Source: Trichosphaerium sp. ATCC 40318 (lineage: Eukaryota; Protista; Tubulinea). From it: a DNA stretch of 64,000 nucleotides. The notes below the pieces were generated by a model. That model saw nothing but the letters and a program-made list of their open reading frames with translations. It was not told the origin of the DNA and did no database searches. This document shows, in pieces, positions 14,920 to 17,611 of this stretch. Made by a program: the position numbers and the translations under genes. The stretch covers positions 1 through 64,000 of the forward strand of contig JALMLS010000483.1 in the NCBI GenBank assembly GCA_038496445.1, written 5' to 3'. Positions within the stretch are counted from its first letter, which is position 1; each line of letters opens with the position of its first letter.

Positions 14920-15340
14920 ATACAAGTTGAACGTAAAATTCTGTGTAGAAAATAGTTGACTTAAAATACGCGCTCCTACGCAACCTAGGGGCTTATAAGC
15001 TGTCTAAGTATTCGTTAATGCTTGCTTGATGAGTGAAGAATCCATTAAAATGTCTGAAGCCAACAAATACGCTTGTTTGGCCAAAAAATCACGATATCCG
15101 TGTAATTGGTTGTATACGCACTATATTATGGTAACATTGCTTTTTTGAGCAACAAAGAGCACTGTGAGTGCGTTTGTTGCATTTATCCTCTTTGTCGGTT
15201 TTAAAACTAAGCTGCTGTACGTAATAGAATTGCAAGTAGCGCAGAAGAATGTGTCAAACATAAACCACAACTTTTTTTCCTTTATGGCGCCAGCGTATAA
15301 AATTCAAACCAGATTTTATCATTTTTATTAGTAACTGTTG

Positions 15341-15503
15341 AAGTGGTAACATTACGTTGTTGCATTGTTAACTCCGGTACGAGATGCTGTAAGTACGAGA
15401 TTATGGATAAGTGTAACGATCTATGGAGACTACCCTCTGAGTAGGCTCGTTTCTTTATCTCAGAACGGGTAGTGCGAACTCAGACATCGAGTCTTCACCA
15501 CTT
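15341..15503 (+). ncRNA. Candidate structured ncRNA, copy 1 (family unknown)
   Basis: Diverged direct repeat of 17340-17508. Terminal stem AAGTGG/CCACTT; internal stems TGGAGAC/GTCTTCA and ACTACCC-TCTGAG/CTCAGA-GGGTAGT. No shared reading frame. Confidence 0.5.
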
Positions 15504-15710
15504 CTGTTTTGTTTACAATGTCAAGTAGAAGCAGTGCAACAAAAAAAAAGAGCGCAAGAGGCTGATATCTTGTTTATTCTTGTGATATGGTTTATTCTCC
15601 AATGTTGTGTACAACACATGGAGTCACATTAGCTGATTTAGCGGTGAATACAGATCCACATGAAGGTGTTTTTACACTTTGCATTTGCCTTGAAAACGGT
15701 TTTAAGTTAA

Positions 15711-16665
15711 TCATGCTTTGCATACTTTGTCTTTTTCATTCATAGTTATCCACACACTTGCAAATCCTCCATCTCCGGGTATACCTACTATTTGTGCTTT
15801 TGTATGAGGTCTGTCTTCAGGATCCTTATTAAACATACGATGAAAAGAACTGCTCCATCCTTGAAGAGTAGATACTTTAGAATCGTAAGAAGGTTCTTCA
15901 AGAATCCAAGGAAATAGCTCTCTATAGGAAGAATAAAACTGTTTCCCTTTGTCTACCATGGCTTGATTGTATGAACTGAAAACAAGACAACCGAGAGGTG
16001 TACCTCTATGACCACCAAATATATCTAAGCACTCTTTATCTTGTATGTCTGATGTCTTAAGATCATCAGTTGCATTACATATCACAGTTATTTCAGTGAA
16101 ACTCTTCTGTGGACTGCCTGTTCCTTTCATCTTTCTTCTCGTTCTTCTTGCTTTGTTATTCAACTTACTTGATTCCCTGAGATAAGATCCCCATTCTGTC
16201 AGACATGACTGATCACATGCTAATACAGACAACTCCTTATTGCTTTGTAGAACAGAAATAATTGATTCTAGAGTTATTACACGTTTATTATCGCTGTATT
16301 TGTCTACTATGTTCTTATTCATCTTGGTGGTATCAACACCCACGTTGTGGAGGTGGAAATAGTCGAGTACAATATCGCACAGTGACGGAAAGTTAGAAGC
16401 GGCTATTTTTTGTATGTAGCACGCTTGGTTTATCTGTTTCAGGCGAGATATCAGTTTTACGCCGTTTTTGAACTCTTCGCTTCCTTGTTCGTCATTCGCA
16501 GTAGCGACAACCCAGAATTGCGGCCTCGCAACGTAATACATCAAGACATTCTCTTTAAAAGTTCTGAAATTTTTGGTAAACGATCACTGAATACAAGGTG
16601 TCCAGTACAGAAACATGCAATTTGTTGAGGAATAGGTTTAGATAGCAAAAACTACAACTGTTCCA
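15711..16665 (-). pseudogene. Intronless unknown ORF (277 aa open part) with an apparently disrupted 5' extension
   Basis: ORF 15711-16544. Upstream sequence reads MEQL*FLLSKPIPQQIACFCTGHLVFSDRLPKISELL and joins the ORF only through a frameshift. Confidence 0.45.
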
Positions 16666-17339
16666 TACTCAATATTGGAGTTTTTTTATGATGTATGACG
16701 AAGGGGAAGCATCGCTTTTGAGATAGTTAGAAATTCCGAAAAGTTTGTGTTGAAAAAAAGTACTTTGACTGTCGGTACTTCTCCTCGGCACACCATGAAC
16801 GAATCGCAAAATGGTTTTAGAGTATAAGTATAGAATACTAGCTACATATTCTAAATCTATCAATTGAAGGTTAAGATGTGAGAAAAAACGTCTCAAAGAT
16901 TCTCGAAATCCCATAAATATCAACAATCAAAAATTTCAGTAATTTTCTTGAAACTGTCTCAAAAGCGATGCTGCCCCGAATTTTTGTGTTGATGAGTTTC
17001 ATCTACTGGAAAGTGATATCGTAGTGCATTACAAGTGTTGGCGTACTATGAAGGTATTGGGCATATCACTAATCTGTAACCGAGGCTTTTATGCCAAAAG
17101 TGGTTGAATACGTATTAAGGCTACGGTTTATGCTGTAATATTGCCTTTAATCGTGCAACAACACGCAATGGCGCTATGTGTACAAATTATAACCTGGACT
17201 TCGATAAAACTACGTTTTAGCGTCTGACACAAGTCGCCTTTAGCTAATACAGTAAGATGAAACGCGAACCACAATTTTTTTTTCTTTCAATTGCAAACAT
17301 TTAAATTCAAACCGGCTTAACTTTTCCTTTAGAGTGTTT

Positions 17340-17508
17340 AAGTGGTAACATTACGTTGTTGCATTGTTAACTTCGGTGCGAGATACTGTAAGTACTAGAT
17401 CACCGGATAGGTGCGCAATCTATGGAGACTCCCTCTGAGTAGGCTCGTTTCTTTATCACAGAACGGGTAGTACGGACGAAGAATTAGCGCGGTCTCCACC
17501 ACTTTTTT
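17340..17508 (+). ncRNA. Candidate structured ncRNA, copy 2, ending in a T-run
   Basis: Same stems as copy 1 (TGGAGAC/GTCTCCA; TAGAT-CACC/GGTG-ATCTA), followed by TTTTTT. Upstream AACCACAA and AAATTCAAACC are shared with copy 1. Confidence 0.55.
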
Positions 17509-17611
17509 GTTGCGAAAACCAAGCCTGAGATACTTTATGAATGTGAATCCTCAGTTCCATACAACACAAGTTGTGACGAGAAATTGTACTTAGAATAAAC
17601 TTACAACTATT

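Follow-up and report, generated by a model that had tools for sequence, protein, structure and literature searches.

Paired candidate small RNA genes with a U6-type promoter in the amoeba Trichosphaerium sp.

To our knowledge, non-coding RNAs are almost unstudied in the amoebozoan lineage. Elsewhere, the small RNAs made by RNA polymerase III (Pol III) form a short and mostly universal list comprising U6, 7SK, RNase P/MRP, Y, vault, signal recognition particle (SRP), and transfer RNAs. Among the described systems closest to the locus considered here are the Class I RNAs of dictyostelids, which are 42 to 65 nt long, are encoded by 18 to 39 genes per genome, and were found in Dictyostelia only (PMC7919456). 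These RNAs share a conserved 11-nt motif beside their 5' stem, and an upstream element called DUSE (WCCCAYAA) lies ≈60 nt ahead of them; in Dictyostelium discoideum they are possibly cut from a longer precursor, and their mature 5' ends can map 3' of where the promoter would place them (PMC7919456). The authors of that study did not anticipate conservation of DUSE, or of its distance, beyond Dictyostelia (PMC7919456). Here, we analyze two similar elements of ≈165 nt in Trichosphaerium sp. ATCC 40318, a marine tubulinean amoeba (Amoebozoa) with a draft genome of 70.87 Mb and 37.7% GC (PMC10521059). They lie within positions 1 to 64,000 of contig JALMLS010000483.1 (assembly GCA_038496445.1, forward strand), a stretch of 64,000 nt with 35 to 41% GC that we refer to as the window.

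The promoter in front of both elements is the one that this genome also uses for U6, U6atac, and RNase P RNA, and neither element is matched by any Rfam family. These two results support the central proposal of an earlier note, written from the letters of the window alone, that the elements specify an independently transcribed RNA of a family it did not recognize. The reading we favor, and hold to be rather probable, is that the pair are genuine genes, maintained by selection, for a Pol III small RNA whose family is unclassified and which is probably the scaffold of a small ribonucleoprotein (RNP). The promoter evidence, on which their status as genes rests, is strong; their expression, fold, partner, and function are what we infer from sequence.

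Promoters and ends of the two copies

Upstream of each copy, the motif AACCACAA (starting at 15263 and 17267) runs into a T-run and is followed by a TATA-like hexamer, TATAAA at 15296 in copy 1 and TTTAAA at 17300 in copy 2, and then, in both, by (A)TTCAAACC. The intervening spacers have diverged between the two copies, and the start of the first motif, the proximal sequence element (PSE), lies exactly 33 nt from the start of the TWTAAA hexamer in both. The earlier note had singled out the same motifs and proposed that they be compared with the small nuclear RNA (snRNA) promoters of this genome. That comparison reveals the same element and the same spacing, at 33 to 34 nt, in the genes for U6, U6atac, and RNase P RNA. 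All U6 genes that we inspected carry AACCACAA or a near variant of it with a T-run, have a TTTAAA whose start lies at +34 from that of the element, and place the U6 5' end 24 nt past the hexamer. In both the U6atac and the RNase P RNA gene, the hexamer sits at +33 from the PSE start, and the 5' end follows 25 nt past it. Most U6 genes additionally have a conserved block, GGCAATGCCATTTCT, directly 5' of the AACCACAA element, which the pair and the RNase P gene do not have.

A search for the joint PSE and TATA pattern returned 17 matches in the 70-Mb genome versus 0 in a reversed control. The matches consist of three U6 genes, copies 1 and 2, and twelve other sites (one identical pair), most of which precede an RNA-like unit with a terminal T-run. 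Because a U6-type PSE and TATA box precede both copies and T-runs lie 3' of both, we regard the two as autonomous Pol III units; this arrangement identifies them as type 3 (U6-like, with an external promoter), from which transcription would follow. The orientation of promoter and terminator also fixes the strand as plus, so that the strand chosen in the earlier note is borne out and the uncertainty it attached to that choice is gone. Its comparison of the upstream motif with DUSE proves apt as well, the host being an amoebozoan and the motifs being those of its own U6, U6atac, and RNase P promoters. The U11 and U12-like genes, which are of RNA polymerase II (Pol II) type, have the AACCACAA element ≈60 to 63 nt upstream without a TATA box; it is the TATA-like box at its fixed distance from the PSE that sets Pol III genes apart from Pol II snRNA genes, and the promoter of the pair is of the TATA-bearing Pol III type. 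The DUSE-like AACCACAA at ≈−63, with or without TATA, therefore marks snRNA-type genes in a tubulinean amoeba and, judged by motif and position, DUSE-like elements extend beyond Dictyostelia. The features of the two copies are as follows.

15263..15278, plus strand: copy 1 PSE, AACCACAA with a T-run, DUSE-like; motif and TATA distance match U6, U6atac, and RNase P
15296..15310, plus strand: copy 1 TATA-like hexamer TATAAA (15296-15301) and ATTCAAACC, the latter shared with copy 2 only; PSE start to hexamer start, 33 nt
15326..15340, plus strand: copy 1 predicted 5' leader, non-conserved, with a putative start at about A15327 (24-25-nt promoter-distance rule)
15341..15503, plus strand: copy 1 RNA core, 163 nt, closed by a predicted 7-bp terminal helix (sequence, BLAST, covariance model, and folding)
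15507..15514, plus strand: copy 1 terminator-like T4-G-T3, with T4 at 15507-15510, weaker than that of copy 2 (read from the sequence)
17267..17283, plus strand: copy 2 PSE, AACCACAA with T9 (genome pattern search)
17300..17313, plus strand: copy 2 TATA-like hexamer TTTAAA (17300-17305) and conserved TTCAAACC (pattern search and flank alignment)
17330..17339, plus strand: copy 2 predicted 5' leader, non-conserved, with a putative start at about A17331 (same promoter-distance rule)
17340..17504, plus strand: copy 2 RNA core, 165 nt (sequence, BLAST, covariance model, and folding)
17503..17508, plus strand: copy 2 Pol III terminator (T6), two bases of which also form the end of the terminal helix (read from the sequence)

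The starts near A15327 and A17331 are predicted because 24 to 25 nt separate the hexamer from the 5' end in U6, U6atac, and RNase P genes. They lie 14 nt (copy 1) and 9 nt (copy 2) 5' of the conserved core. The 5' boundary drawn in the earlier note thus holds for the core, and promoter geometry moves the predicted start ≈9 to 14 nt upstream of it. The intervening leaders are non-conserved and unpaired in the predicted folds of both copies; they may be cut off or simply put up with, or the distance rule may be looser for this gene. At the other end, copy 2 finishes in the T6 that the note had reported, and the U6 genes of this genome terminate in T7.

Conservation, copy number, and predicted fold

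The two copies are direct repeats on the plus strand, offset by 1,999 bp, and were found as first described, namely as two elements of ≈165 nt lying ≈2.0 kb apart with invariant blocks and variable segments. Their overall identity is 84%, but it is distributed as a mosaic along their length. Nucleotides 1 to 33 of copy 1 align to copy 2 with no difference, and a central block of ≈59 nt, from ATCTATGGAGACT to GGGTAGT, contains two differences only (one indel and one substitution), whereas about half of the positions differ in the variable segments at alignment columns ≈57 to 80 and ≈131 to 157. Outside the RNA body, the flanks align at background level save for three shared stretches: AACCACAA with its T-run, the TATA-like hexamer followed by (A)TTCAAACC, and a TGTT just 5' of the core. 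Confinement of the similarity to the promoter boxes and the RNA body indicates what appears, from the alignment, to be an old duplication under selection.

The earlier note had proposed a BLAST search for further copies. None exist beyond the original two in the 70-Mb assembly, where BLAST with copy 1 recovered copies 1 and 2 only, and a genome scan at E≤10 with a covariance model built from the pair (R1) returned the same two loci only. This low copy number bears on the alternative raised in the note, a transposon end or a guide-RNA scaffold. If the repeats were the end of a mobile element, a short interspersed nuclear element (SINE), a miniature inverted-repeat transposable element (MITE), or the guide-RNA scaffold of a TnpB or Fanzor nuclease, it would be natural for direct repeats to lie 2 kb apart with an open reading frame (ORF) between them, and a genuine MITE does lie between the copies. 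This MITE-like element (16702-16980) spans ≈280 bp and has 26-nt terminal inverted repeats that are 92% complementary; its genome search yielded 55 matches, representing at least 40 separate copies at 74 to 84% identity. Because the same tool finds two copies of the RNA element against at least 40 of the adjacent MITE, the pair is not a SINE or MITE family. Moreover, no target-site duplication is seen in the flanks, the copies show mosaic conservation instead of even decay, and the 276-aa ORF and its neighbors (ORFs of at least 60 aa, 13-20 kb) contain no Pfam domain of the transposase, reverse transcriptase, RuvC/TnpB, or zinc-ribbon kind, including Fanzor. We consider the mobile-element alternative largely refuted and its remaining probability slight in the extreme. 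The ORF itself is intronless, occupies 15711-16541 on the minus strand between the copies, converges on copy 1, and has neither a Pfam domain nor a look-alike in the protein atlas.

Folding predicts a terminal helix of 7 bp, AAGUGGU/ACCACUU, in both copies, with pairing probabilities of 0.8 to 1.0 in copy 1 and 0.5 to 0.8 in copy 2. Abutting it, a helix UGGAGAC/GUCU(C/U)CA is predicted to close the 3' half with a probability of 0.99 in copy 2 and ≈0.5 in copy 1. The closing stem AAGTGG/CCACTT beside TGGAGAC/GTCT(C/T)CA, which had been recognized by eye, is thus recovered in both copies and extended to 7 bp, while the minimum-energy folds of the 5' half differ between them. The RNAalifold consensus comprises 46 pairs, all of them kept in both copies and one of them with a double change; five one-sided transitions within its helices preserve pairing via G-U, and do so on the plus strand only. 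The observation that several differences become G-U pairs therefore stands for these five changes, but not as independent support, as the model was fitted to the same two sequences on which it is judged. In the pseudoknot proposed between CUCGU and RCGAG, only invariant bases take part, leaving no variation by which the pairing could be tested. We treat the consensus fold as a hypothesis, given that it derives from the very sequences it describes and that shuffling has no power to test its covariation.

Several points weigh against the interpretation of the pair as maintained genes. The folding energies are no better than those of shuffled sequences (z of −1.3 and −0.5), and a covariation check on two rows, with a shuffle control of 255/500, has no statistical power. 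The conserved core begins 9 to 14 nt farther from the promoter than do the reference genes, and the terminator of copy 1 amounts to T4 only. No homologue was found, with 0 matches in two exact-pattern scans of JGI metagenome contigs, and two scans of IMG/VR gave a single 18-mer chance match with unrelated flanks. Exact-product look-ups of the two small ORFs inside the copies, made for transcript evidence, likewise returned no record. Finally, gene conversion between the tandem paralogues, and not functional constraint, could account for the invariant blocks.

This last point leads to the possibility that one or both copies are decaying relics whose identical blocks are functionless conversion tracts. 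Tandem paralogues 2 kb apart, a weak T4 after copy 1, and unremarkable fold energies would all fit such a history. However, PSE, TATA box, and their spacing have been kept in both copies while the spacers diverged, and conversion would not single out these boxes; identity also stops at the terminal helix. We accordingly consider decay unlikely, and selectively maintained Pol III genes the better account of the pair.

Family searches and genes sharing the promoter

A scan of the whole window with Rfam 15 at gathering scores gave no match, and a scan of 15200-17600 at E≤10 (a search space of 2.4 kb) gave none overlapping either copy. The Rfam models do work in this genome, recovering U6 at 106 bits, U11 at 66, RNase P at 121, and U6atac at 52. 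A scan for transfer and transfer-messenger RNAs was negative, which removes tRNA as a candidate identity. These scans agree with the earlier note, which had found no hallmark of U1 to U6, U3, SRP, RNase P/MRP, or tRNA in the copies and had named a confident Rfam match to a known family as a result that would refute their novelty.

Several specific identities were tried and rejected. The template of a telomerase RNA corresponds to ≈1.5 telomere repeats, and the longest match to a permutation of CCCTAA in either copy is 5 nt, providing no template for a repeat of the presumed TTAGGG type; no telomere repeat was seen at 20 contig starts. An identity with U11 or U12 is excluded because U11 and a U12-like RNA sit at other loci. 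These minor spliceosomal genes comprise U11 at C151:66788-66902, U6atac at C20:307774-307894, and a U12-like RNA with an insertion at C49:145161-145303 plus ≈75 nt upstream. A role as a ribosomal RNA guide finds no backing, since the best antiparallel run against 20 kb of ribosomal DNA is 14 nt including G-U, and shuffled queries reach 14 to 20 nt; C/D and H/ACA boxes were not seen in the pair by eye.

A further possibility is that the RNA belongs to a universal family, such as U4atac or a 7SK-like or U3-like RNA, so divergent that Rfam misses it. U4atac was not detected genome-wide (Rfam, E≤1), although U11, U12-like, and U6atac RNAs are present, and Rfam likewise misses ≈ten further genes that share the promoter, as it would if divergence were common here. 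U4atac consists of two segments that pair with stems I and II of U6atac and flank a kink-turn (K-turn) hairpin, together with an Sm site. In the pair, the best run complementary to the U6atac of this genome, whose stem I is GGUUAGCAGC, is 9 nt with several G-U pairs, and inspection revealed no Sm site, K-turn, or C/D box. With the Rfam models also succeeding elsewhere in the genome, U4atac was rejected as an identity, and we assign a low probability to a divergent universal family in general.

The further genes with PSE and TATA box comprise ≈ten units that look RNA-like, end in a T-run, and have no match in Rfam at E≤0.5. Their positions are C1:847613, C6:737806, C7:279042, C24:10689 (identical to C125:180035), C50:30415, C60:148823, C76:53824, C93:41965, C251:32947, and C381:20490. 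The pair shows no significant similarity to ten of these orphan RNAs, with local alignment z-scores of −1.2 to 1.2. A restricted pairing alignment between the pair and the ten orphan RNAs, U6, U11, and the U12-like RNA (24 comparisons) gave a best value of ≈3 standard deviations, below the maximum of 40 shuffles, and a 13-bp duplex that the pair seemed to form with the RNA at C7:279042 was unexceptional. At C6:737806 (plus strand), approximately nine short hairpins, each AAAGTCCT...AGGC, occupy ≈330 nt 3' of the U6-type promoter, an array that resembles tandem small structured units under one Pol III promoter.

Another of these units bears on whether the RNA might be a spliced-leader RNA or an intron mimic, in which CUGUAAGUAC would serve as 5' splice site and UUUCUUUAUC(U/A)CAG as the 3' splice-site tract. 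Both splice-like motifs are kept in both copies, and the orphan RNA at C60:148823 (minus strand, 134 nt) has GGTGAGT, TACTAAC, and TTGCAG within 41 nt, a full intron-like signal set behind a Pol III-type promoter. Spliced-leader genes, however, are of the Pol II snRNA type and occur in many copies, with a 5' exon followed by a splice donor and an Sm site. The pair, by comparison, has a TATA-bearing Pol III promoter, a T-run terminator, no Sm site that we could see, and two gene copies only, and no part of the RNA is better conserved than the would-be intron. The donor-like GUAAGUA is also off the local type. On both strands of the window, GTACGT (59) and GTATGT (56) occur at ≈2x the composition expectation, which suggests a GTAYGT consensus for 5' splice sites in this amoeba, whereas GTAAGT is unenriched (47 observed versus ≈43 expected). 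A spliced-leader identity thus seems very improbable.

Two protein-coding genes raise the question of whether the RNA could be the vault RNA of this amoeba or the partner of another TROVE protein, that is, a Pol III product whose ends pair and which TEP1 binds within vault particles. On the minus strand at C75:164500-174499, a TEP1-type gene encodes a TROVE domain, a DUF4062/AAA-type NTPase, an APAF1-type helical domain, and WD40 propellers matching TEP1 models, and a second TROVE gene, for a Ro60-like protein, is found at C20:313423-314467, 5.5 kb from the U6atac gene. With these genes present, RNAs of vault and Y type are expected here. Vault RNAs are Pol III transcripts with paired ends, often occur as tandem paralogues, and conserve their ends while the middle varies (PMC7904556), by analogy with which the pair might qualify. 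Nevertheless, the Rfam Vault and Y RNA models have no match at E≤10, the 163 to 165 nt of the cores exceed the 88 to 140 nt of vault RNAs (PMC7904556), and the likeness to tRNA-type A and B boxes is partial (by eye) and lies inside a helix. Other orphan RNAs also compete for these roles. The 133-nt RNA at C50:30415, with a GAUGAG/CUCAUC terminal stem and UUCGA near its 3' end, is at least as vault-like and looks the better fit to a vault RNA, and the permuted-tRNA rod at C93:41965 looks the better candidate for a Ro60 partner. We therefore regard a vault or TROVE-partner identity as quite improbable for the pair.

Proposed product and comparison with known systems

Taking the pair as maintained Pol III genes, a SNAPc-like factor would read AACCACAA and the T-run ≈63 nt upstream of the start, and TATA-binding protein (TBP) with TFIIIB would read the TWTAAA box ≈30 nt upstream. 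Pol III would initiate near 15327 and 17331 and terminate at the T-run, yielding a structured RNA of ≈165 to 185 nt. The ends of its core would meet in the 7-bp helix, with the helix that encloses the 3' half directly beside it, and the short leader, which is not conserved, would probably be trimmed or tolerated. Of the two invariant blocks, one comprises the first 33 nt of the core and the other ≈59 nt in the center; both would most likely offer sequence-specific binding surfaces to a protein partner, so that the RNA would scaffold a small RNP, as do Y, vault, 7SK, or perhaps dictyostelid Class I RNAs, and the variable hairpins would drift freely.

A pair behind a U6-type promoter and without a recognizable family is a candidate addition to the list of Pol III RNAs. 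One orphan RNA with predicted expression and no partner would be a modest finding alone, but this pair is one of a set with the same promoter. Together with the TEP1 and Ro60-like genes, the ≈ten unclassified genes form a defined pool of candidates among which to look for vault, Y, U4atac, SRP, or other RNAs that are still missing. More speculatively, and as a rather long shot, the pair may encode the RNA subunit of an RNP that is either new or still without an identified RNA in Amoebozoa; the vault or TEP1-bound RNA would be an example. Were this true, the U6-type promoter signature would be a handle on ≈ten further unclassified Pol III RNAs.

Compared with known systems, the pair shares its promoter, but not its product, with genes of its own genome. 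With U6, U6atac, and RNase P it has in common AACCACAA and the T-run, the 33 to 34-nt spacing to TWTAAA, and a T-run terminator. It differs from them in that its core starts 34 to 39 nt past the TATA hexamer instead of 24 to 25 nt, in the (A)TTCAAACC after the TATA box that is peculiar to the pair, and in an RNA that matches none of theirs in sequence or structure. Ciliate and plant telomerase RNAs likewise have a type 3 Pol III promoter, a similar size (≈150 to 270 nt), and a long-range closing helix, but the pair lacks a run complementary to TTAGGG. Vault and Y RNAs resemble it in being made by Pol III, in pairing their ends, in carrying an oligo-U tail, and in their small tandem gene clusters, and their TROVE partner genes are present in this genome; unlike them, the pair has no Rfam match, no clear A and B boxes, and no signature of the Ro-binding helix, and it is longer than 88 to 140 nt (PMC7904556).

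The dictyostelid Class I RNAs offer a further parallel in general design. Size and gene number (≈165 nt and 2 genes) do not fit that class, to which the pair therefore does not belong, and no Rfam model matches. Even so, both are amoebozoan and probably made by Pol III, both stand ≈60 nt downstream of a DUSE-type element (WCCCAYAA there, AACCACAA here), and in both a short helix, predicted in the case of the pair, joins the 5' and 3' ends, with a conserved block beside its 5' strand and a variable remainder.

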